DNA of 63,795 bases, filler included, from Pelomyxa schiedti (GCA_020536535.1; 4 parts of 4 records of this genome joined end to end with filler, not necessarily neighbours in it), one strand, 5' to 3'; counted from the whole stretch's first letter, positions 304 through 16,122 are shown. Notes: generated by a model from the letters alone, not told the origin. Numbers and translations are program-made.

Positions 304-3300
304 ATGTACGACAGTTTCTATTTCCTTAAGGGACATAGGTGCCATCCGCGTTCGGTGGTTGCTCTCAAGGGCAGGTATGAAGGGTGTTTAAACGAAAAAG
401 GGGAATACATGCATGGAAGGATGGATTACTTCAATGGATCAGTCTATTATGGGACTTGGACTAGTGACAAGCACGATGGTCGTGGAACAATGACCTGGCG
501 CAATGGTGACAAGTATTGTGGATGCTGGAACAACGACATGAAAGAGGGAGAGGGCACACAGAATTGGGAGGATGGATCAATTTACACGGGCAACTGGCAC
601 AAAAACCAACAGCACGGCCATGGTGTGATGCAGAGTCAGAAGAAGGCATACATATATGATGGAATGTGGAGAAATGGCAAGAAGCATGGCACAGGCACAA
701 TAAAGTACACGAATGGGGATGCTTATGTAGGATCATGGGCCAATGGTATGAAAGAGGGAGAGGGCACCCAGAATTGGAAGGATGGATCAATTTACACAGG
801 CAACTGGCACAAAAACCTACGGCATGGTCATGGCGTGCTGCAGAGCCAGCATAAGGCATACATCTATGACGGAATGTGGAAAAACAACAAGAAACAAGGA
901 ACTGGCACCATAAAGTATACGAATGGGGACACTTATGTAGGATCATGGGAGAATGGCAAGCGGAACAATGGCATTGAAACTAAAGCCAACGGTGACACCT
1001 ACGACGGGCAATGGACAGGGAGAGAAGAAGGGAGTGGGGTGATGAGATTGGCAAGTGGGGAGTGCTACATTGGGAAATGGATGGATGACAAACCAACAGG
1101 CAACGGTGAGATGACAATGAAAAATGGGGATGTGTATTCAGGGGAGTGGGTTCTTGGGAAGATAAGTGGGCAGGGCACTGTTACTCGGGCAAGTGGGCAT
1201 GTGTTAAAGGTGAATTTCACATAAGGGATGCCAGAAGGGCCTGGCCTTTGGATTTACAACAACAGCACTGGCGACTTTGTGACATTCAGCTGCAACTTTG
1301 TGAAGGGCAAGCGGAATGGGTTAGGCAAGTTCGCACTGAAAGATGGCAGGGAAATTGCATGTCACTGGGTAAATGACGAGCCAGATCCTGATCGGCCACA
1401 TGCTGTTTTGGTGGAAGTTAATCGTGTGGTAATGCATTGCGAATGGAAACCAGATGGACAAGATTTGCTATTGATGTTTCATGGTAAGGGTGCATCAATA
1501 AACTTGCAACTTGTGACGTCATCACATTCAATTACGTGGAGGGAGTCTATCAACACAGTGGCATAGTGGGAGGTGTGTATCTTTGGAATGACATCTCTTG
1601 TTGTTAAAATAAGACCACAGAGCATCAGTCAGCAGGAGAGCTAGAAGAAAGGCAAGTGGTGCTAAAGGTCTCAGGTAAATTTCACTTTTGTCTTTTTATT
1701 ATCTATTTCAAGCTCCCCACAGATCCACAGAAGGAATTGGAAACTGTGAAAACTGAACTGGAGCAACTCAATTGCTGTAATGTCGTGGAACTGAAGAAAC
1801 TCGAAGTTGCAACTGAAGGTACACTTCCACTTTTTTCTTCAATACTGACAAAGGCTCTGAAGTCTTGAAACTAACAAAGAAAGAGCTCAAAGTCAAACAA
1901 CAAGACCTCGATCACACACTACAATGCATACAAGAGCTCCAAAATGAGAACAATCGACTTACAAGTTGCCTCAAAGACACAGAGGCGGCTGCTTCCAGTA
2001 TGAAGATAAAAATGGACACAAGTTACGAGGTGTGCCTACCAGACTGCTAAAAATTATAACTTGCACAGCAAATTGATTATATGGGGAAACAACTCGCCGA
2101 GTTGGAAACGGAGAGGGAAAGTGTGAGTGTTATTTCTTTCTTTGTTTCTCTCCACTAATCTGCACAGGAACATGGTGCGGTGATCAAACTGGAGGTTTCA
2201 GACAATCACTTCTTCCCTCCCTTTTTTTTTTTTTAACCCCAACTTATTCAAATCAGGAAGGCTTGAAGGCACTGGCAAAGGAGAATGAACAGGTATGAGA
2301 GCCAACCAACCGCCAATATCGATGTTGATTGTCCCAGTTACAACAAGAAAACAAGCAACTTGATTGCCGTGTTCAGGACACCAAGGCTACCCTCTGTCAA
2401 GAACGAACTGCCATGGAAAATCTGCGGAAAGCCCTACTGGAAGAAGTGGAAAGATATAAGGTTTCTCCTTCCTTCAGACTTTGATCCCAATCCCTCTCCA
2501 GACCATTGTGAACACGATGACCTCACTGATTTCAGCAACTCCTGGTGATTTTGGTGTGGAGAAACTCCTTGGGACTGGTTCAAATGCAGCTGCATTCAAA
2601 GTTAAATACCGAACAAGCGGCTCCACAAACAATAGAAGTTTGTTGGCCACGAGTTCATCAACAGACATGGTGATGAAAGTTCTTTTCAACTGGGAGAACA
2701 CACCACAGCAAACCATGCTGAGGCAGAAATACATGGCTGAGTGTGTGGTACTCTCGTTGGTTCCTCATCACCCTAACGTGATCCACCCTCTCGGTGCAAT
2801 TGTCATTCCTTGGTATGTGTTGTTTTTTTTTCTTCAGGGCCATCCCACTGACACGCAATTCTCTGTCACCATTGAAAAACATAAACAACAGCCTCCCGTC
2901 TGAGTTTGTGGAAAAGATACCAAGTGACCAACCAGTTTATAGAGAGCTGGGCAACCACAAATCATTGGCCATCATAATGCCCCATTGTGGCATCACCCTG
3001 TCATCCTTCCTCACTGCATGCACCAACAGGACAGTCAAAATTGCACAGAGCCTGTTTGTTCAAGGAGTCAAAGCCATACAGCACATTGAGTCACACTCGA
3101 TTGTTCACAGGTTTTTGCGGTCTCTGACTGTTCATTAAACAAACACAAACACCCACAGGGATATCAAAGGGGACAACATTCTTGTTGACACTGAGAACGG
3201 GAGGCTGACACTGATTGACTTTGGCGAGGCCCAGGTCTGCCCAAACATGGAGATGACGATAACTGCCACAACAGAGACGTGGGGAAACACCGGAACAATT

Positions 3301-3630
3301 CCTCCTGAGCTGAGTGTGTTCCTCAAGTGCATAACAAGGGGTGGCAGTGGTGTGTTCTCATACTCAAAGTGTGACTCGTTTGCACTGGCGCTCACATTCT
3401 GGGATGCTCTCCTGCCACAGACCAACAGGTTCATTGGGAGCACAATGAACCACGACATGAGCACGTTCAACACCCAGTCACTCCTCAACGAGTTCCCTGT
3501 TTTGTTTTCGTCAAAACCAACAGGAGCACCAACTAATGATGCTTTGGAATCAGTGATGATTGGGATGATGAACACTGACAAATCTATGAGGCTCTCTGCC
3601 ACTCAGGCAATTTCAGCACTCACGTCATGA
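304..3630 (+). pseudogene. MORN repeat - coiled coil - PINK1-like Ser/Thr kinase gene, multi-exon, with in-frame stops (probable pseudogene or split gene)
   Basis: MORN repeats (YxGxWxxGxxxGxG) at 304-1350, short coiled-coil exons, then kinase motifs LGTGSNAAAF, VMKVLFNWE, HPNVIH, HR|DIKGDNIL (intron 3111-3158), DFG, WGNTGTIPPE, YSKCDSF. In-frame TAA at 1222-1224 lies inside a MORN unit (NFT*GMPEGPG). TAG at 1564-1566 sits where paralogs have GAG TGG GAG|gt. Confidence 0.75.
538..957 (+). repeat. Intragenic tandem duplication of a 210-nt (70-aa, three-MORN) unit
   Basis: ATGAAAGAGGGAGAGGGCAC occurs at 538 and 748. The peptide MKEGEGTQNWxDGSIYTGNWHKN...GTIKYTNGDxYVGSW is repeated twice. Confidence 0.9.
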
Positions 3631-4549
3631 CAATGGCTCAATAAAAAACCAGACCAGCTTGTGTAGTAAGGGAGAAAGAAGCCCAAATACAAACACAAGA
3701 GTTTATTTATTGTTTATTACTTTAGCTTGAGCCACTACAATGGCGTTGTTCCCGCCTTATAAAGGCACTCGAATCAGTTCTAGGCGCCTGAATCTCTCTC
3801 AGGGTCTTAACAGATTCGCGGTAGTTTTCCCAGAAAAAAGTGATTAGAACCGCACTTAGCGAAGTCACCTCGCCACACCATCAATATCGAATTCAATAAG
3901 CGGGTGATCGAATCTATTACAGACGTAACAGCATCGTAACAACAACAGCGCGGAGATGGAGCGTTTCACACACAAGTGAAGGAGTGTCTCGCGCAAAATA
4001 TCAACCAAGGAATGCAATCTTTTTCGCTGCAGCAGGGTCCTCAACGTCGGAAGACACTAAACAGTGTTGTTCATTTGTTGGGTATGCTACAATGATGGCC
4101 CCACACTGTTGTGTGTTGTATTTCGGTTACTATGTATAAAGAACCCCAAAAAGTGTTTCTTTTCTGAAGTTCGGCAATGAAAGAATCACTGACTACCACT
4201 GTTTCATGTCCAATCCAGGCAGCTCCCAGATAATCTTGAAAACAACTTCTGATGAGTCATGCCCAGGACTGAGGGTAACCAAGGTGGTTGGCACCCAAAA
4301 CAACACTCGTCAGATCAAGCTTAGCACCACTCCAAAAGGACAGCAGAGCAAAGCATGGAGCAGGAGGAGCTTGTAACTGAATACACTCCCAGACTTCAGA
4401 AACAAGCAAGAAGACAACACCAGCGTATGGTTGCTTCTCACACTGCTGACCCTCAGCCTGAGCAGCAGGGTCAAGAAGACAACAATGGGAACAACCACAA
4501 CCACCATAGCCACAGTGGTCAGAAGCAAAAGCAAACACAGACACAGCCA

Positions 4550-4796
4550 AAAAACTTGAGGGAGGCCAGTATCGAGTACCAGGGGATGAATGCACCTGTG
4601 TTGGGTGATTCCTTCAGGGAGCCAACTGTTGATGTGTGACTTCCCTTTTTTTTATCCCTACAGGAGGAATCCTGGCATTTGGATCGCTTATGAACTTGAT
4701 GTGCCCCAGTTCATTGGTACTATTGGAAAGCCAAGTGAAGGGCGAAATTCATACTACATTCCCAAGTTATCTTGAAGGACTCTCTCCTGGATATAC
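4550..4796 (+). repeat. Duplicated gene-fragment block, also at about 12559-12823
   Basis: Near-identical DNA encoding KN(L/F)REASIE..GMNA.VLGDS.REPTVD and GGILAFGSLMNLMCPSSLVLLESQVKGEIHTT, with an intron-like T-rich spacer in both copies. Confidence 0.85.
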
Positions 4797-6330
4797 ACAA
4801 GCTTGTTGTCACCGAAATTTGAAGCTGCAAAACTCTGAAGCACAGAAACACTTTCTGACAAGAACTCCAATTATCCAAAATCGAGAACATTTAATATTCT
4901 AAATGGACCCAAAGAAATCTAATCCGAAATCTAATCCCTCTGAGTGGGAGTGTCCTACTTGGGTGTGCAGAAATGTGGGATTTTTCTTTATTTTCCATCA
5001 TCTTTTCCTTCTGTCATCCCATGGTGGAAAGTGGACTGTGTTTTTATCTTTTAAATGGGAGGTGGCAGTGCACTCCCTGAGGATTTGATGGAGTCTGACT
5101 TCTCAATGTAAACTGTGGAGGAACAGACACCAAGCCATTTCTTGCTGGCATGAAGTTCAAAAAAAAATCATCACAATCTGCTCTCTTTGGCCCTCATACC
5201 CTCTGTGGTGAAGCATAAGATAGTTCAAGCACCGAAGGGCAGAAGACACAGCAGGACGAACCATTTAGTCCTACAGTAATGCCAGTGCCAGGGGCCCTTT
5301 CATCCCTTTTGGTGGCACTGTCATCACACTTTTCACTCGCATACATCAACAACCTCAAAGGCAGTGAAATATATAAATATTAACCCAATGTTAGGGTGCC
5401 TTGAAGATACTTAATGCCGGAACTATCATACTGTAAATGGGGAATGCTGTTGCAGGCAGGGCAACACAGCACATAAGTGACAAGAAATACAGAATAGTCA
5501 CATGTGTCCCTTTGTCTTTAACATGTGCTTGCTTCCACAGCTTCACCTGGGCCCCAGGGTCTTCCATCCAGCGTTCTCTGTGCACAAGAAGTAAGTTGCA
5601 AATGCCGTAAAAACTACTCAATGTGTGCCACAGTCGCGACCCATAATGGACCGCGTTTTTAATTTTTAAGTGGGAGCAGGTCACAATGGACTTCCGGAGG
5701 ATTTGAAGATACAAGCTTGACTACTTTTATGCCATTACAGTGATCTCAAAGACTTGGAGTCTTACTTTTCATCTCAGGCTCAGAGTCATTGGCATTACTG
5801 GATTGGGTGCACGGACTATTTTTTTGCATCCTCCATCACGCTTGAGAGGCAATGCAGACCAATGTTAAGGGCTCCATCGTTAGATCTGGTGTCACAAAGC
5901 ACCTGTGATATGTAAGCTCTGAGCAAAACCTCTGGAAGTACAGAGTGCTGAACAACCACAAATAAGAAGCCACTGCCAGCTGCAACCTGATCGAAGTTAT
6001 CATTGATCATCAGGGTTGATTGCCCTCGAAGTACCGCATCGGCGGACATGATTCACACCGGGCCAGCAGGTCACCTTGCGTATGCGTGGCGTCGTGGCTG
6101 TGGACGAGTTTTGTTGGAAACAAATCATCAGACCACACAATTCCAGAGACCTGTTGAGCCTTCAGAAACTTCATATTTTTTCTGGCTCAATTTAGCCAGA
6201 TTAAAGTTCTCGATTCAGAATAATTGGAGCTCCTACTGAAGAAAGGACTGCTAGGTGGAATCGGTGCATCCAAAGCAGTGGGGTCATTCCTCACTTCAAA
6301 ATAATGTTTACCGTGACTATGTTGAATTTC

Positions 6331-6962
6331 AGCGTCAAGATTGTCAACAATGACTGGCGTTTCGATGGAAGAGGCACTTCACGAGGTTTACTTTGCGCAC
6401 TTTATTGGCATGCTATTTACTTGTGGGTAGGTTGATTTGTCAATTGACAGAATGTTCTATTGGGCTACTTACAAACGGCGGCATCGTGCAAGAAACTCCA
6501 TGGAAAGGCTTGAGCCAGTTGAAACGATAAGCATTGTGTGCCCCAATAACAATCCACTTCTGTCATTTATTTCTCTCATTGCGCCTCCAATTAATTGCCA
6601 GTGGAAATACGATTATTGTGGTACCCTCATCACAGTTCCCCTTGTGTGCACTGGACATGTACCAGGTAACCTTAAACCCTGCACACAGTAAGTGACCACT
6701 CACCCTCCAACAGATATTTGACACATCTGACTTTTCTCCCGGTGTTATCAACATCGTTACCGGAGTTGCCGATCACCTCGCCACGGTGCTTGTTGACCAC
6801 CAGAACCTTCGCGCCGTCTTGGTACTTTGGTTCCGCTGAGGTATGTTCGACTCCGTAACAACACACAAACAGTTCACGCAATAACCGCATCACTAGTGAA
6901 ACATGAAGCGTACCTGAGTTTCCTATGGCCAAGTCCGCGATTGGAGTGATCGCCAAGGATTC
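6331..6962 (+). pseudogene. ALDH16-like aldehyde dehydrogenase C-terminal fragment, copy A
   Basis: Peptides EVDLSIDRMFYWA, EPVETISIVCPNNNPLLSFISLIAPP, PGVINIVTGVADHL and KRT*VSYGQVRDWSD lie in shifting frames, with intron remnants, deletions and a TGA at a Trp position. Confidence 0.7.
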
Positions 6963-7230
6963 AATCTTGTAGCAAACTCACATCCAATGTAGCACAGCCT
7001 CTTTCCATAACTCCTCTATTTTGATCCTTTCCCAGAATTGTTAACGAAAAGTCCCAGAGTGAGCCATTTGAATAGCAAGGACAACCCGTATGCATTGAAT
7101 GCACCAGCCAAGAAGCAATTTGTATTTGTGAATAGGGGAAAAAAAAATACAGAGAGCAATTGTCCTGTGGTTCAAAAACCACTGTGAACCAGTTATGAAA
7201 CACTGGAGTGAGAGGACAAAGGCAGTGGAG

Positions 7231-7877
7231 TCAGGGCTCTCTCTCTGCAACATAAACAACAGTTTTTCCATCGATGACATCCACCACACTCCTGAGGGGT
7301 ACCTTGGACAAGATTGAAGGAGCAACCTTGACGGACCTGCTCCTGACAAGGATATCCGCTTCAAGCTGTGTTGCAAGCCACTCGACAGACTTTTCCAGGA
7401 AATGAAATGGAACGTCGAGGTTGTACAGGAACTCCGGTGCTGATGAAGACTTGGGTCTTGCCTGATAAACCCCCAGTACACAAAAGGCTGGTGGGATCTT
7501 TTGCACTCTGATTGATGGCGTGTCTCCTGCGAGCAGGATTTGCTTCAGTGTGAGATTGGCCTCCTTTGCAGGAGGCACTGGCACCCCAGCAAGATCCACA
7601 AAGACCCAAGCTGAGATCTCTCCTGTTTTGTCAACGTCGTCACGCACGGCGGAAAGTTTCTTGTTGCTGTTCAGGGAGCATGAGGTTGTGTGCGACTTTG
7701 AGGAGGGAGGTGGATCTGAACCTGTGTATTCCCCACAGACTGGAGACCACGGAGGTATTGTTTATGTGCAAAATATCGACCTGCTTGAGCACTTCCCCCA
7801 GGCTGCAAGAGGGTGAGGCTGGCACGTACTGTGGAATGAGGAAGGGAGGGGGAGAGTTAGGTGGATTCCAACAGTGT
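7231..7877 (-). CDS. 3' exons of IFI44-like GTPase paralog, copy A (truncated by scaffold gap)
   Basis: Nearly identical to the 14343-14989 C-terminal exons (DKTGEISAWVFVDLAGVPVPPAKE...VYVAEREP*). Confidence 0.75.
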
Positions 7878-7977
7878 NNNNNNNNNNNNNNNNNNNNNNN
7901 NNNNNNNNNNNNNNNNNNNNNNNNNNNNNNNNNNNNNNNNNNNNNNNNNNNNNNNNNNNNNNNNNNNNNNNNNNNNN
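7878..7977. other. 100-N scaffold gap
   Basis: Run of 100 N. Confidence 0.99.
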
Positions 7978-8169
7978 TTTCAAGTCGTTTTCGAGTCCTT
8001 ATAAGCCCGACACACTCCGACCTTAGAATCACGACCCAAACCTCATAAATCAAAACAAACAACAAACAGAACAAATAATAGAATCCTTTCTTGATCTCGT
8101 TCTTGTTCTCTGCTTTGCTGTCACACAACGAACTACATCCCACAGAAGCACACACTCCTTCAGGCAGGA

Positions 8170-10242
8170 ATGGAGACTGTATATGACCATGGTGACCTCT
8201 TCCATGGTGTTCTTTCCTCACACAAGGGAAAGAAATTCTTATCCACAAAAGTGAAAGTGAAGAACGGGAGAGGGAGGGTGCTCTTTGATGATGACAAAGA
8301 GGGAGGAGGGAGTTACATTGGTTGGTGGAAGGATGACAAATTTGATGGGAGGGGTGTGCGCTTGTGGGCAAATGGAGACAGGTATGTGGGCAACTGGGAA
8401 TTAGGAGAAGAGAGCGGGCCAGGGACAAAAAAGTGGGCCCGAGATGGATCCTCATTCACTGGTAGTTGGGTGTGTGGTTTCCCATCCTCTGGGATAATGA
8501 CGTGGCCAAATGGAGACAACTTTGAGGGCACATTTGTGCATAAACAAGTGGGAGGAGAGGGCAAATATTTTGGCAAGGGCGTTATGCACTTCTCACCTTC
8601 ATCCCCCAAAGCTCCACTGGAAGGTGTTCTTGAAGACACCACATTTCATGGAAGTGATGGGTCTTCCCATAAAATGGGAATTTCATCCCGTATAGACAGT
8701 TCTTCTGATCAAATGGGATCCAAGCTATCAGCGCAGAGAAACCAATGGAATGAAGAAAAAAAACAGCTTGAGGCACCCACTTTCACTCATTCACTTGAAA
8801 GAACCTACTAACACCAACACTAGGAACAAATTGCCGAACTAACAAGGAGGAATGAGCAGGTAGGCCACTCTTTGCAAGATTTCTTCTGACTTCTGGGGAA
8901 ACTTTTTTCCAAGCTCCAAACTGATCAAGCACACATTCAGAATCAGATAACATCCACACGAGAAACCTGTTCTCAAGAACAGCTGACTGTGACCAAGATG
9001 GAAAAAGACATTGCAAGATACAAGGTTTCCAGGTTGGGCAGACTGATGCTTGTTTCTCATTACCGCTCTTTCCACATACACACAGGAGATTGTAAACACA
9101 ATGACATCACTGCTTCCAGCAGATATTTCTGATTTCCGAGCTAACAGACTCCTTGGGACAGGATCAAATGCCGCAGCATTTGAGGTGCAATACCAGAGCA
9201 ACGATTCATCAGCCAGGGAGATGGTGATGAAAGTTCTTTTCAACTGGGAGAACACGCCACGACACACTCTGTTGAAGCAGAAATACATGGTTGAGTGTGT
9301 TACACTCTCACTGGTGCCAGACCACCCAAATGTGATTCACCCCCTTGGTGTTATGATTGTGTCATGGTACCAAAAAAAAAACACTCCAAAAAACCAATAA
9401 TGCGTAGCCTTCCACCTGAGTTTGTTGAGAAAATACCTCCTGATAAACCAGTCTTCAGGGAACTGTGCAGGAACAAGTCACTTGCCATCCTGATGCCACA
9501 CTGTGGGACAACATTGTCATCCTTCTTGGAACAATCACGTTCACTTTCTCAGCAGCGACATTTAGCCGAGGTACTACATCTGTTTGTTCAAGGACTCAAA
9601 GCAATCCATCACATTGAGTCATGTTCGATTGTTCACAGGTTGAGTGAAAAGTGCTGCTTAATTAATGACTCACCTCACTGAGGCAGAGACATCAAGGAAG
9701 ACAACATCCTTGTCACCCCTGTGACTGGTAAGCTTACCCTTATTGACTTTGGTGAAGCACAGCACTGTCCCAACAGCACAAGCCTCGAAATGATGATCTC
9801 CAGCACATCGCAACCCTGGGGAAACACAGGCACCATGCCACCAGAGCTGAGTGCTGTCCTCAGGAGCATAGCCAGGGGCAGGGGTGTTGTGTTCTCATAC
9901 TCCAAGTGTGACTCCTTCGCACTTGCTCTCACGTTTTATGATGCACTGCTCCCACCTTCAAACAAGTTTATTGGGAGCAGCCTGTTCAGTGACATGAGTG
10001 AGTTCAACACACCCTCCCTATGCAATTCGTTCCCAGTCAGGGCATTGTCACCACCACAGATACCAACCCCCACAAGTCCAGCATCATCATACACATCCAC
10101 CAGCCAACCCCACATAAATATCCCCAACATGACAGAGGCTTTCAAGCAAGTGTTGATTGAGATGCTGAACCCTGACAAAGCACACAGGCTTGCAACCTTT
10201 GATGCCCTCGCAAGGCTTGCCCCAACCCAAGATCTCTACTAA
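8170..10242 (+). CDS. MORN repeat - short coiled coil - PINK1-like Ser/Thr kinase, multi-exon
   Basis: ATG at 8170 and MORN units (GSYIGWWKDDKFDGRGVRLWANGDRYVGNW). Kinase motifs LGTGSNAAAF, VMKVLFNWE, HPNVIH, HR|DIKEDNIL, DFG, WGNTGTMPPE, YSKCDSF. Stop TAA at 10240-10242. The first intron needs a GC donor at 8773. Confidence 0.85.
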
Positions 10243-13200
10243 ACTTCCACTACAAGAAGAAACAAAAAAGATCAGCTGTTCCAGGAATTTCTGGGGTGGG
10301 TCAGAATTACCACTATCACAGCAACAATAATGGCAGTGAATAGAATAGTTCCCCAGAAACGGAAGTGATTCGGTTTCTTGCTGAGAAAAAGAGAAATTTC
10401 ACTCGTGTTAGATCCAGTGTTTTTCATTTTTATGGTTTTCATAAAAATGTTAATGAATGACTTACTACGGGGCTGACTGACTTGCAGCTGTATTTTCTGA
10501 AGTGTTAGTGAGCACTGCTGCTGCTCAAGGCAAGTTTAATGATAAAGTAACATGACATGAAGACCGGCGCAAGTATGAACATATACTCGAAAGCGAAAAA
10601 CCTGAGTTGCCATTATTGACGCTGGTTTACACCACGTTGGCCGTGTTTCTCTGCAACGAAAAATTCTTGTAAGTTTACTACGGCTGAAAAAGAGATCGGC
10701 GCTCTTCGACTGGGCATGGGTTATGTGTCGGCTGGGTTGCACCTGGGCATTTCTGCCATTCAAAATCAGAACTCGGGTGCCAAACCGTTGACTTCACAAA
10801 ACTTGACCGTGCATACACACAGGAGCTCCTACTGTTTGCAAAAAGCAAGGACCCAGGCCTTCTCAACAGAGAGCTTTATTTGTAAATGTTTATTACATAT
10901 GTAACAGATCTGTCCGATGTTGAAGTATTTCTCATTCATATTACTCGCTATACAAACCGCGCGGTTGAGGCCGAGACGGTGGCGATATATACCTTTGATT
11001 TGATTTATCTGGAATACTCTTGAGGCAACTCTTGCAGAGATAAACAAACCACTGTAGACTGATAAGTTCATGGAGCTGACGAAAATCTAAACTCCAAAGG
11101 CAGGCGGGGCTTGCAACCCTCTTTTGGTGTTATAAGAGTTGAGCATAGGTTCTGAACTTGGTAGCTTGACTGTATTTTTTTTGTCCTTTCCCTCACCTTC
11201 CCAGATACACTGGAAACTTGCGAAAGGAAATGTTGAGAGTTTGCGCATATGAAAAACTCGTTATACACCTTTGAGCCTGAAATGCTGTGTGGTGCAGCTT
11301 TGTTGATCTGATTTGGAAGTCAGAACTCGATGCGCAGTACTGTACACTTCATGGTTGTGGAGATAAATAAGCCACTGGTGAGTGATAAGCAAGTCGAAAG
11401 GGAACCCACTACTGCACCGTGGCTGAGGGATGGAGAATCCAATGCTTTGTTTACCTGAGCAGCATAACAACGGAGATGGATATATACAAACAAAGAAAGG
11501 CAAAAATTGCTGTGTTTGAACATTGTTGGCTTCTCATTAGAGATTATAGTGAACAACCATGATAAGATGACACTGAGAGTATTTGAAACTTTATCCTGTT
11601 GGGTCAGTATTATGACCAGTTTATTCTCCCAAACGCGGAATTGATTCAACTGAGTACGGAAAGAAGGAGTTGAGGATTGCAATTTATTTGCAAGAAAGCC
11701 CTCATGTGCTGTCTCACGCCATTGGTCAAACTTCAGGCTTACTTTAGGTTTCCATGTCTTGAGTACTGAGATATTGTTATACTAATCCACATTCCAGAAG
11801 AGGGGAATATATATATATAGGAATATTCTCCTTCAGTTGGAATGCATGGTGCCTCCAAAAATATTAACAGTGGGAGTGTTGTGGTAGAACTGTGTTTTGG
11901 CTATCACTGAGAGTTGCGTTGTGACAAGTTTGGTTGTTCAGCACCAATATTTGTTCTCATTTTTTTTTCTTTGTTGATACATGGAACTTTCTGCCTCTGG
12001 TTGCTGTATTTTTCAGGCCCAAGCTGGTTCACCAAATGGATGAGCTTACATGAGCTTTCTCTCGTACTACTCCCTCCAAGTTCTGGGCCCTTTCCTTCAG
12101 CCACCCCCACCCATAATGAAAGATGGATGACAATTTATCTCTGGAATGGCAGTGGTTCACAACAACTTCTGGGTTTCAACCTGAGTTCTGTGTGAAAACT
12201 TACCAACAAACTCTGGGGTATTCCTTTACCTATTTCAATCACCCATAATGAAACATGAGGGTTATAGCCTCTGTTTGGTTACGAATGTTTCGGACTCTTA
12301 ACGCTGATTGATGGTGAGACTACCCAATTGCGTTCAACAAGATATAAAAAAGATGACATGTGAGAAGAAGGCTTTTCTGGTGTGGGGCCTGTGCTGCTCC
12401 AATTTCTTGCAGTCATCTCTCCAGTCGGAGCTCTCATTATCCTGAACCAAGAACATTTAATCTGCTGAAATGAGCCAGAAAAAATATGAAACTTCTGAGG
12501 AGATAGGAGACCAGAACTGGAAGTATACGTCTCCAGCACACACTGGGCTTCAAAAGACAAAAAACTTCAGGGAGGCCAGTATTGAATGCCGGGGGATGAA
12601 TGCACTTGTGTTGGGCGATTCCCATAGGGAGCCAACTGTTGATGTGATGACTTCCCTTTTTTTGTTTTTTTTTTTGTTTATCCCTGCAGGAGGAATCTTG
12701 GCATTTGGATCGCTGATGAACTTGATGTGCCCCAGTTCATTGGTACTATTGGAAAGCCAAGTGAAGGGTGAAATTCATACTACATCCCCAAGTTATCTTG
12801 AAGGGGACTCTCTCCTGGATATAATGCTGAACAACCACAAATAAGAAGCCACTGCCAGCAGCAACCTGATCGATCATCAGGGTTGATTGCGGACATGATT
12901 CGCACCGGGCCAGCAGGTCACCTTGCGTACGCGTGGCGTCGTTGGCTGACTCTCTCCAGTGAACAAGGCCCACAGCACTGGGGCAATCCCGCACCCTTCC
13001 AAAGGGAGGGAGTTGCAAAGCGGTCTGTATAGTACATGTAAGTGTAGTGTACTTGATAGATTTAACAAGTACCCCATTATCACGGTAATAGTAATGACCA
13101 CCACTATTAATGACAAAAATTGTTGAAGGGAGCACATGTGCCTCAGCCAATCAATTGCCAATAGGTAGAAGCTCAGGAGTTGTCGAGTGCCATGGAATGG

Positions 13201-13374
13201 AACCACACAATTCCAGAGACCTATTGGGCCTTCAGAAACTTCATATTTTTTCTGGCTCAATTTAAAATGCGGATGTTGTATGCATGATTACCATCATTTC
13301 CGTTCTAATTCTGTTTCACGATGAGCGCAACGGCATTCATTACTGGTCACCTTCGTTTAAAACATAACAGAGTT

Positions 13375-14080
13375 TGCGTCAAGATTGTCAACAATGACTG
13401 GCGTTTCGATGGAAGAGGTTTACTTTGCGCACTTCATTGCCATGCTATTTACTTGTGGGTAGGTTGATTTATCAATTGACAGAATGTTCTATTGGCTACT
13501 TACAAACGGCGGCATCGTGCAAGAAACTCCATGGAAAGGTTTTACTGTCCAAGTATGCTAACGTTGAGAAAATCGAATTACTTACGCACCGAAGGTGAAT
13601 GAGCCAGTTGGAACGATAAGCATTGTGTGCCCCAACAACAATCCACTTCTGTCATTTATTTCTCTCATTGCGCCTCCAATTAATTGCCCGTGGAAGTACG
13701 ATTATTGTGGTACCCTCATCACAGTTCCCCTTGTGTGCACTGTACATGTACCAGGTAACCTTAAACCCCAGTGGGGTTCCCCTCACCCTCCAACAGATAT
13801 TTGACACGTCTGACTTGCCTCCCGGTGTTATCAACATCGTTACCGGAGTTGCCGATCACCTCGCCAAGGTGCTTGTTGACCACCAGAACCTTCGCACCAT
13901 CTGGTACTTTGGTTCCGCTGAGGTATGTTCGACTCCGTAACAACAAACAAACAGTTCACGCAATAACCGCATCACCAGGGATCCTACCACGTTGAGTGAG
14001 AGTATCTTGCTGCCTCAAACAATAAGCGGACCTGAGTTTCCTATGGCCAAGTCCGCGATTGGAGTGATCGCCAAGGATTC
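13375..14080 (+). pseudogene. ALDH16-like aldehyde dehydrogenase C-terminal fragment, copy B
   Basis: Peptides GGIVQETPWKG, NEPVGTISIVCPNNNPLLSFISLIAP, LPPGVINIVTGVADHLAKVLVDHQNLRTIWYFGSAE and SNNKRT*VSYGQVRDW. Frameshifted, with introns retained. Confidence 0.75.
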
Positions 14081-14342
14081 AATCTTGTAACAAACTCGCA
14101 TCCAATGTAACACAGCCTCTTTCCATAACTCCTCAATTTTGATCCTTTCCCAGAATTGTTAACGAAAAGTCCCAGAGTGAGCCATTCGAATAGCAAGTAT
14201 GCATTGAATGCACCAGCCAAGAAGCAATTTGTATTTGTGAACAGGGGGAAAAAAAAATACAGAGAGCAATTGTCCTGTGGTTCAAAAACCACTGTGAACC
14301 AGTTATGAAACACTGGAGTGAGAGGACAACAAGTCAATTGAG

Positions 14343-16122
14343 TCAGGGCTCTCTCTCTGCAACGTAAACAACAGTTTTTCCATCAATGACATCCACAACA
14401 CTCCTGAGGAGTACCTTGGACAAGATTGAAGGGGCAACCTTGGTCGACCTGCTCCTGACAAGAATATCTGCTTCAAGCTGTGTTGCAAGCCACTTGACAG
14501 ACTTTTCCAGGAAATTATATGGAACGTCGAGGTTGTACAGGAACTCCGGTGCTGATGAAGACTTGGGTCTTGCCTGATAAACCCCCAGTACACAAAAGGC
14601 TGGTGGGATCTTTTGCACTCTGATTGATAGCGTGTCTCCTGCGTGCAGGATTTGCTTCAGTGTGAGATTGGCCTCCTTTGCAGGAGGCACTGGCACCCCA
14701 GCAAGATCCACAAAGACCCAAGCTGAGATCTCTCCTGTTTTGTCAACGTAGTCACGCACGGCGGAAAGTTTCTTGTTGCTGTTCAGGGAGGATGAGGTTG
14801 TGCGCGACTTTGAGGAGGGAGGTGGATCTGAACCTGTGTATTCCCCACAGACTGGAGACCACAGAGGCATTGTTTATGTGCAAAATATCGACCTGCTTGA
14901 GCACTTCCCCCAGGCTGCAAGAGGGTGAGGCTGGCACGTACTGTGGAATGAGGAAGGGAGGGGGAGAGTTAGGTGGATTCCAACAGTGTATTCTCCACAC
15001 ATTGGACGTCACAGACTCCATAGTCCCCTCAAGATAACACTCCCGAGGATGTGCCAGAAGATATGTGATGGCATTCCTGCACAAAACGGTGACAAAGCAA
15101 AAGGGAGAAGAAGGAAAAAACCATTACCTATAGGCAAGCCTCAAGATACCCCAGTACTGAAGATCCTTCTCCATGTTGCGTGTTGTTTCTTCAACATAAT
15201 TTTCAAACTTGATCACAGACGTCGTGGGCAAATATGTGGCAGCACCTATTATCTTGATGTTGTGCTCCACCTCGAGATCGTCTGTCATCATGTTGATGAA
15301 GTTGCACACAACGATTGGATGCCTCCCAGCCCGGATTATGGACTTCACGTGGGTGCCCAGAACTTCAAGGCTTTGGGGGTTGGTTGCAGCGCTGATCGGG
15401 ACAATGATGATGACTGAGTGAATGATGCGTGACTTGCCTTGCTCAACAATAAGGTCGAAGGAGTCGTCCATGCATGTTCCCGGCTCAACCTTCCCATTCA
15501 GGAACTCCTCAACTCTCAGCGTTGTGTAGTTTCTCTCTGACAGACCCCATGTATCCCAGAAGTGCAAGTTGAGCCTCTTCATCATCTCGTCGGTTGGGGC
15601 GTTTCCTGGCAGAAGATCTGCAAGTGAGTGCTCAGTGTATTTGCGGGTTACATGATCTGCAATGTGGAAGGCTTGCAATGGGGTAAGTACATCTTGCCCA
15701 GAGCTAAAGGAGGTTGCCAGTCCATTGTAAAATGCACTCTTTCCAGAGCCTCGCCATCCCCACACCTTTTTTTTTTTTTGGGTTGGATTGGGATCTGCAC
15801 ATGCCATGCATCAACACATTGATACCAGAATGTTGATCCTTGTCTTTGTTGGATTTGCCAACCTTGTCCTTTCTGGAAGCCACTCAGCTCCAAACCACGC
15901 TGTGGGGATGGGTCAAAAAAAAGATAAAAAAGGGTAGGTGAAGGCGGGGGCACCAAGGAGAAGGGTAACACAGCCCATGTACTTGGCTCCATCCACGAAG
16001 TACTCATACAGGACCTTGTCAGGCACAAGCCCTTTGTGGATAAGAGCCCTCTGTCCTGGCCGAAGGGTGACTGTCGTCACAAAGGGATGTTCCTTGTCTG
16101 CATCTGCAGTTGTCTTGACAAA
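14343..16122 (-). CDS. IFI44-like P-loop GTPase with extra C-terminal domain (5' end truncated by contig end)
   Basis: Spliced RINIL|VWGWRGSGKSAFYNG (Walker A), FWDTWGL (G3-like), EFLNGKV, IHSVIIIVP and FENYVEETTRNMEKDL follow the IFI44/IFI44L motif order. Further exons splice in frame to the stop at 14343. Confidence 0.75.

Follow-up and report, generated by a model that had tools for sequence, protein, structure and literature searches.

Two MORN-repeat kinase genes of Pelomyxa schiedti belong to an expanded family whose catalytic domain is probably related to PINK1

Can a kinase that resembles the mitochondrial sensor PINK1 sit at the end of a protein built for another address, and is the resemblance a sign of kinship? 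The question is raised by a window of 63,795 nucleotides from the anaerobic amoeba Pelomyxa schiedti (GCA_020536535.1), the whole stretch of DNA analysed here, in which four parts of the genome are joined end to end with filler. Two of its genes, at 409-3630 (gene 1) and 8170-10242 (gene 2), both on the plus strand of contig C392 (16,122 bp), encode MORN repeats, a coiled coil and a C-terminal kinase domain, in that order. PINK1 (PTEN-induced kinase 1; kinome family NKF2) is the mitochondrial kinase of animals that phosphorylates Ser65 of ubiquitin and of the ubiquitin-like (Ubl) domain of Parkin, and it is usually regarded as a single-copy sensor of mitochondrial damage. An initial annotation, made from the sequence alone, had read the region 2503-10242 as PINK1-like kinases carrying MORN repeats in place of a mitochondrial targeting sequence. 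The span starts one base inside the first kinase exon of gene 1 and ends with the stop codon of gene 2. We conclude that the two genes are probably diverged paralogues within a family of about 100 multidomain Ser/Thr kinases, the catalytic domain of which is closest to PINK1 among characterised kinases without being orthologous to it.

Gene 1 has 13 exons, onto which the public protein P0055 (872 amino acids) maps exactly, exon by exon. The MORN-repeat region (409-1571; exons 409-1191, 1237-1425 and 1491-1571) matched PF02493 with nine repeats in a Pfam scan (E = 3.5e-48), and an in-frame TAA at 1225-1227 falls within a short intron. A possible alternative start is the in-frame ATG upstream at 304. 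The coiled-coil linker (1620-2460) was delimited by three-frame translation and the exon map; its seven small exons end in ...ERYK, which abuts the kinase, and a long helix (residues 2-29) runs into the kinase in the AlphaFold2 model of the P0055 kinase region. The first of three kinase exons (2502-2812) encodes a juxta-kinase helix, the glycine loop GTGSNAAAF, a variable beta2-beta3 loop, the catalytic Lys in MKVLFNW, the alphaC Glu and HPNVIH. The second (2892-3110) holds most of an element resembling insertion 3 of PINK1 (LPSEFVEKIP...KSLAIIM; encoded in full by 2796-2812 and 2892-2964), followed by the hinge, helices alphaD and alphaE, and the start of HRD up to part of the R. The third (3159-3630) supplies DIKGDNIL, DFG, WGNTGTIPPE, FSYSKCDSFALA and the subdomain XI Arg, and matched Pkinase (PF00069) above the cut-off at 35.7 bits. 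The stop codon TGA (3628-3630) lies 12 residues past that Arg, so the protein has no C-terminal extension.

P0055 is deposited as "phosphatidylinositol 4-phosphate 5-kinase 8". We rejected this identity after Pfam scans of the large exon open reading frames, which leave aside the small coiled-coil exons, and inspection of the precomputed P0055 domains. These returned only MORN and protein-kinase families (PF00069/PF07714) and no lipid-kinase domain. Judged by domain content, the name is a mis-transfer caused by the MORN repeats of plant-type PIP5K.

Gene 2 begins at the ATG at 8170, and position 10242 is the end of its stop codon. Its MORN region (8170-8772) is shorter than that of gene 1, with one scored PF02493 repeat (E = 3e-7), and leads through two coiled-coil exons (8824-8859 and 8914-9024) into three kinase exons (9086-9366, 9408-9638 and 9687-10242), the third of which matched Pkinase at 28.8 bits. 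The public model of this gene, P0093 (354 amino acids), is truncated; it keeps the 41-nucleotide GT..AG intron at 9367-9407 and halts at a stop codon inside it. The truncation is thus due to an intron left unspliced in the annotation and not to a mutation. The last two kinase exons of gene 2 fall outside P0093.

The motif series quoted in the initial annotation was recovered in both genes: GTGSNAAAF, MKVLFNWE, HPNVIH, LP(S/P)EFVEKIP...KSLAI(I/L)M, HRDIK(G/E)DNIL, DFG, WGNTGT(I/M)PPE and FSYSKCDSFALA. All six introns in or just before the kinase parts (41, 79 and 48 nucleotides in gene 1; 61, 41 and 48 nucleotides in gene 2) are of the GT..AG type, span 41-79 nucleotides and occupy homologous positions in the two genes, and one of them interrupts HRDIK(G/E)DNIL after HR in both. 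Compared exon by exon, the kinase parts share 51-63% protein identity, which indicates that the paralogues are old and did not arise by recent tandem copying. We weighed the possibility that both loci are decaying, non-functional copies of a repeat-associated gene family. The region is rich in repeats and contains a segmental duplication, many of the genome matches are fragmentary and some carry stops, the public runs on record include no RNA, and the truncated P0093 could be taken in the same sense. Against decay, the exons are open, their introns are conserved in type and position, the catalytic residues are all intact in both genes, and the truncation has the annotation-level cause given above. 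We regard decay as very improbable.

Exon-level searches of Pfam and the Protein Data Bank (PDB) were too weak for kinase classification, and full-length public models were used instead. Gene 2 was searched exon by exon; of the two genes, folding and the family tree cover gene 1 (as P0055). We assessed catalytic competence in a kinase-domain alignment of 42 family members, to which the counts out of 42 below refer. The catalytic Lys, the alphaC Glu, the HRD Asp and the subdomain XI Arg are invariant (42 of 42), and 38-42 members retain the other HRD residues, the catalytic-loop Asn, DFG and PPE. In Pfam scans, Pkinase PF00069 scored above its cut-off. The AlphaFold model of P0055:520-872 reached a mean predicted local distance difference test (pLDDT) score of 88 and a predicted template modelling score of 0.83. 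Both window genes retain every catalytic residue, and a pseudokinase reading was rejected on this ground. From their residues, the family members are predicted to be active Ser/Thr protein kinases.

We then asked which characterised kinases lie closest. The sequence searches of the PDB covered 177,635 sequences. With P0055:515-872 as query, human PINK1 ranked first (E = 1.5e-12, residues 43-304 against 204-463) and beetle PINK1 next; Pim-1 reached 5e-10 but only over 65 residues around the catalytic loop, and louse PINK1 stood lower (1.2e-8). PINK1 was also first for the paralogue P0013 (1.9e-12) and, in a near tie with MINK1, for P0045, which is distantly related and carries the deposited name "PTEN induced putative kinase 1". 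A profile of 42 core members (A1) placed PINK1 in all of the 12 best distinct sequences (58 versus 45 bits). A second, more diverse profile that includes Mastigamoeba proteins (A2) scored louse PINK1 at 108, beetle PINK1 at 90 and human PINK1 at 85 bits over nearly the whole domain, with the next kinases at 79 bits; the best of 8,000 other kinases sharing words with it reached 77.6 bits. Word-index protein searches with P0045 and with this profile returned no PINK1 proteins. The similarity to PINK1 in the PDB searches is far beyond chance, with expect values of 1.5e-12 (one sequence as query) and 4e-30 (profile).

The human PINK1 motifs named in the initial annotation reappeared in the tool alignments, the glycine-loop motif being seen in louse PINK1, and K-x-x-(F/W)-N, GN...PE, YSKxD and the position of the insertion all align with PINK1. 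The glycine loop reads G-x-G-(C/S)-N/S-A-A/V in PINK1 and G-x-G-(S/C)-N-A-A in the family. Both have K-x-x-(F/W)-N after the catalytic Lys and a spacing of 21 residues from this Lys to the alphaC Glu. In both, HPN(V/I)I is followed by a beta4-beta5 insertion that starts with (I/V)PxLP and ends with SL..(V/I)M, and further along come HRD(I/L)KxDNILV, GN...(P/A)PE and, in helix alphaF, YSK(C/A)D(S/A)(F/W)A.

Structure comparison gave the same first rank. With the P0055 model as query, PINK1 filled the top 9 places of a Foldseek search and the top 14 of VIA-align. In the latter, PINK1 structures aligned over 286-307 residues with Z scores of 25.3-26.9, and CDK2 over about 255 residues with a Z score of 24.4. 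In a shape search of the Atlas, a single cluster of rotifer kinases of 612 amino acids stood out (template modelling score of 0.76 versus 0.66).

A number of observations weigh against this reading of the two genes. The lead of PINK1 is moderate, at 8-13 bits for the single sequence and profile A1, and profile A2 puts human PINK1 only 6 bits over PHKG2. When the distant relatives P0051 (from Mastigamoeba) and P0089 (from a metagenome) were searched alone, PINK1 was not among the top 60 matches, and the confident model of P0051 is best matched by CDK2, WEE1 and TNIK. The structural lead is small (Z scores of 26.9 versus 24.4) and arises in part from the extra N-terminal helix; the PINK1 structure 5oat, aligned without that helix, ties with CDK2. 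The four sequencing runs found come from a single study and none is recorded as RNA; in their Logan contigs no joint corresponding to a predicted intron was seen, and the two joints that did occur have short sides and resemble cross-matches between paralogues. Finally, the dimerisation by the coiled coil and the membrane binding by the MORN repeats that we propose below draw on general knowledge of these modules.

Part of this evidence would fit a kinase group that diverged independently in this lineage and has no particular tie to PINK1, in which the motifs and the insertion reflect convergence or long-branch similarity. The modest score margins favour this view, as do the distant relatives that do not retrieve PINK1 first. 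Some members are automatically annotated as "calmodulin-dependent protein kinase", and a feature search of the ESM-Atlas returned generic kinase clusters only. However, seven separate motifs and one insertion agree with PINK1 in order and spacing, for instance in the interval of 21 residues noted above. With two independent profiles, PINK1 of three species scores above all other solved kinases, its lead widens as the profile is made more diverse, and the prominence of the rotifer cluster in the shape search also speaks against an unrelated group. We therefore consider the absence of kinship rather unlikely. The claim of a relationship to PINK1 held for gene 1, for P0013, for P0045 in its near tie and for both profiles, where PINK1 is the top solved match; it did not extend to the distant P0051 and P0089, which rank other kinases first.

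A probable kinship of the catalytic core leaves the question of orthology. [quoted passage not shown] Its C-terminal extension, of about 68 residues, packs on the C-lobe together with the N-terminal extension (PMC11160474). We compared the family with this definition. Neither a presequence nor a membrane segment was found in P0055, the N-terminus of which lies inside the MORN repeats and the most hydrophobic 19-residue segment of which belongs to the kinase core. No C-terminal extension is present: in 40 of 41 members the chain ends 11-25 residues beyond the subdomain XI Arg, and the same is true of both window genes. At the site of insertion 1 (beta2-beta3) the family has a variable low-complexity loop of about 5-35 residues (pLDDT <50) without sequence similarity to PINK1. 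Insertion 2 of PINK1, between alphaC and beta4, forms the dimer interface for trans-phosphorylation of Ser228; it is absent from the family, where the stretch from the alphaC Glu to HPN is 9 residues, compared with about 30 in human PINK1. Human Ser228 is the ninth residue past the catalytic Lys; in the family, Thr stands at the eighth position (36 of 42) and Pro at the ninth (35 of 42). Lacking a presequence, a membrane anchor, insertion 2 and a C-terminal extension, these proteins are not PINK1 orthologues and cannot sense import failure at the TOM complex. We thus rejected orthology.

For the third loop, insertion 3, the family has a counterpart. It lies between beta4 and beta5 as in PINK1, has 28 residues compared with 32 in human PINK1 (about 285-318), is strongly conserved (P123, P126 and F129 in 40-41 of 42 members) and is modelled with a pLDDT of about 90. 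In human PINK1, R302, G307 and G309 of this insertion are reported to be conserved between insects and humans and needed for substrate recognition, and the insertion to tolerate neither insertion nor deletion (bioRxiv 10.1101/2023.03.31.534916). The family columns aligned to these residues contain D/E/S, E/D/Q and A/C/S/G, respectively, and the PINK1 residues are not conserved. The resemblance to insertion 3 thus held for position and approximate length and failed for the substrate-binding residues.

To delimit the family, we searched the P. schiedti assembly (52.4 Mb, 5,337 contigs) with the last kinase exon of gene 1 and obtained 137 matches, of which about 100 reached E ≤ 1e-20; a single contig often held several. 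The proposal of an expanded protist family was in this way borne out for P. schiedti. An exhaustive HMMER scan with the last exon of gene 2 against 1.84 billion representative proteins gave only 52 matches; the ten that were looked up by name belong to P. schiedti or, among the distant ones, to Mastigamoeba balamuthi. A word-index search of 5.8 billion proteins added 53 proteins, all from P. schiedti except two marginal generic kinases. All strong matches bear P. schiedti names. A profile search contributed P0089, a protein of 235 amino acids from a JGI metagenome that matches the family profile at E = 5.7e-39, carries WGNPNYIPPE and YDKCD, and is the only relative found outside the Archamoebae; it suggests that unsampled environmental protists may hold the family too. 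On the evidence of these searches, the kinase family is lineage-restricted and occurs so far almost only in P. schiedti.

Throughout the family the kinase is C-terminal, behind a helix or coiled coil, and the members match coiled-coil Pfam models weakly. The N-terminal modules vary: Sel1 repeats occur in about 19 models and ankyrin repeats in about 11, and Ras/Rho, SH3 with CS, and an INTS5-like region were also seen. MORN repeats are present in both window genes and in P0008, a protein of 3021 amino acids named as a MORN repeat protein. The combination of MORN and coiled-coil modules without a mitochondrial targeting sequence, as first proposed, holds for the two window genes; family-wide, MORN members are a minority, and Sel1 and ankyrin repeats occur far more often. 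When the modules are placed on a quick maximum-likelihood tree of the family, on which outlier branches are long, at least 10 changes are needed and gene 1 lies beside a Sel1/ankyrin subclade, a pattern that indicates repeated shuffling of the N-terminal domains. The deposited names, which besides PIP5K 8 and the calmodulin-dependent label include Sel1 repeat protein, hide the family.

We propose the following mechanism for these proteins. MORN repeats bind membranes or phospholipids in other proteins. The N-terminal module would be the targeting or interaction part of each member, and the MORN array of the window genes would place the protein on a membrane or a partner. The coiled coil would dimerise the kinase and thereby allow trans-autophosphorylation, possibly in replacement of the dimer that PINK1 forms through insertion 2, and the conserved insertion would dock a substrate. 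The family members would then be cytosolic or membrane-associated active kinases.

A more specific proposal is that the kinases are functional descendants of PINK1 that lost mitochondrial targeting, still phosphorylate Ser65 of ubiquitin or Ubl, were redeployed by their MORN, Sel1 and ankyrin modules, and feed a phospho-ubiquitin pathway of the Parkin type. Sequence searches put PINK1 first among solved kinases, as does structure comparison for the Pelomyxa model; 6eqi, a ubiquitin-bound PINK1, aligns over 290 residues; and the insertion-3-like element is strongly conserved and modelled with high confidence. The same genome also encodes a Parkin-like protein, on contig C291 (G000:C291:68884-69663, plus strand; L031:1385-2164, continuing at L031:2244-2414). 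Its first open reading frame matched zf-RING_12, the RING0 domain of Parkin, above the cut-off, all 23 of its 23 PDB matches were to Parkin (best E = 1.7e-5), and the next exon resembles RING1. A Parkin-like gene is unexpected in an anaerobic amoeba and matters for any pathway of the PINK1 type.

Several features speak against such a function. The residues R302, G307 and G309 are replaced in the family (by D/E, E/D and A/C/S), and this lack of conservation at the ubiquitin-contact residues counts against ubiquitin recognition having simply been carried over. The insertion-3 element differs in length from one said to allow no such change, Thr-Pro or Pro stands where PINK1 has Ser228, and both insertion 2, with its dimer interface, and the C-terminal extension are missing. 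About a hundred paralogues acting on one common substrate would also be unusual. We consider a retained ubiquitin kinase function improbable. Equally doubtful, at about the same low level, is its wider form, a mitochondria-independent phospho-ubiquitin system in Pelomyxa, perhaps in Archamoebae generally, in which about 100 PINK1-derived kinases, each aimed by its module at a membrane, organelle or endosymbiont, would act with the Parkin-like RING0 ligase of contig C291. Our preferred reading is that of a family with a PINK1-like catalytic core that is probably related to PINK1 and is set in a different architecture.

We compared these results with previous work. PINK1, MORN and Sel1 go unmentioned in the Pelomyxa genome paper, which uses the word "kinase" only for metabolic enzymes. 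No account of such a protist family emerged from our literature searches on PINK1 with Mastigamoeba or Amoebozoa, or from full-text searches for "PINK1-like". In the literature on Archamoebae that we consulted, PINK1 comes up only as an absence; it has been reported missing from Entamoeba (PMC9796589). The kinase expansion in P. schiedti is undescribed, and it is PINK1-like but non-orthologous. An anaerobic amoeba thus carries about 100 PINK1-like catalytic domains without any of the elements by which PINK1 is tied to the TOM complex. Should the kinship be true, the family shows what the kinase core of PINK1 can do beyond mitochondrial quality control and gives the study of substrate recognition many natural insertion-3 variants. 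Considered alongside the Parkin-like gene, it also prompts a question about the age of the PINK1/Parkin pair.

The DNA between and beyond the two genes holds further features. An assembly gap, a run of N at 7878-7977, lies 193 nucleotides upstream of the ATG of gene 2; it is intergenic and touches no coding exon, and we rejected a reading frame across it for this reason. No contig bridging the gap was found in four public runs of one study, and the adjacency of genes 1 and 2 therefore rests on scaffolding. The argument about the kinases is independent of this adjacency. Run contigs that reach 7877 extend up to 204 letters further, so the missing stretch is longer than the 100 N suggest. The first 30 of these letters equal window positions 14990-15019, which belong to the other copy of a segmental duplication (95% identity). 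Copy A of this duplication (5946-7877) ends at the gap, is 91-98% identical to 12825-14989 (copy B) and, beyond the gap edge, continues like copy B. It carries an aldehyde-dehydrogenase fragment at about 6511-6893, whose partner at 13623-13940 matched PF00171 (E = 6e-9).

Directly to the right of the gap is a high-copy interspersed repeat of 178 nucleotides (7978-8155) that ends 15 nucleotides before the ATG of gene 2. It has at least 40 copies in the genome at 91-99% identity, and its contig depth is 100-800 times that of its flanks. Dispersed repeats with 83-87% identity were seen downstream of gene 1 and close to copy B of the duplication (4545-4795 and 12555-12823, and an inverted pair at 6162-6254 and 12406-12498). 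On the minus strand, an open reading frame of 227 amino acids at 15124-15807 contains a P-loop-like GSGKS and a DTWG motif and had no Pfam match at E ≤ 0.1; its motifs suggest a GTPase candidate.

Three known systems help to place the family. The first is PINK1 itself, whose catalytic motifs and insertion the family shares in order and spacing. The family differs in that a coiled coil and MORN, Sel1 or ankyrin modules occupy the N-terminal region, in having WGN for GGN and PPE for APE, in its copy number of about 100 compared with a single PINK1 gene, and in its host, an anaerobe with hydrogenosome-like organelles. The second is the plant-type PIP5K, which resembles gene 1 in placing an N-terminal MORN array before a C-terminal catalytic domain of kinase type. 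That domain is a phosphatidylinositol-phosphate kinase in PIP5K, whereas that of gene 1 is a protein kinase. The third comprises the Roco/LRRK-type kinases of Dictyostelium, a lineage-specific expansion in which one kinase type is combined with changing repeat and GTPase modules. The Pelomyxa family likewise joins a single kinase type to shifting repeat or GTPase modules within one lineage. Its kinase is C-terminal, lies behind a coiled coil and is PINK1-like, whereas that of the Roco proteins is TKL-like.

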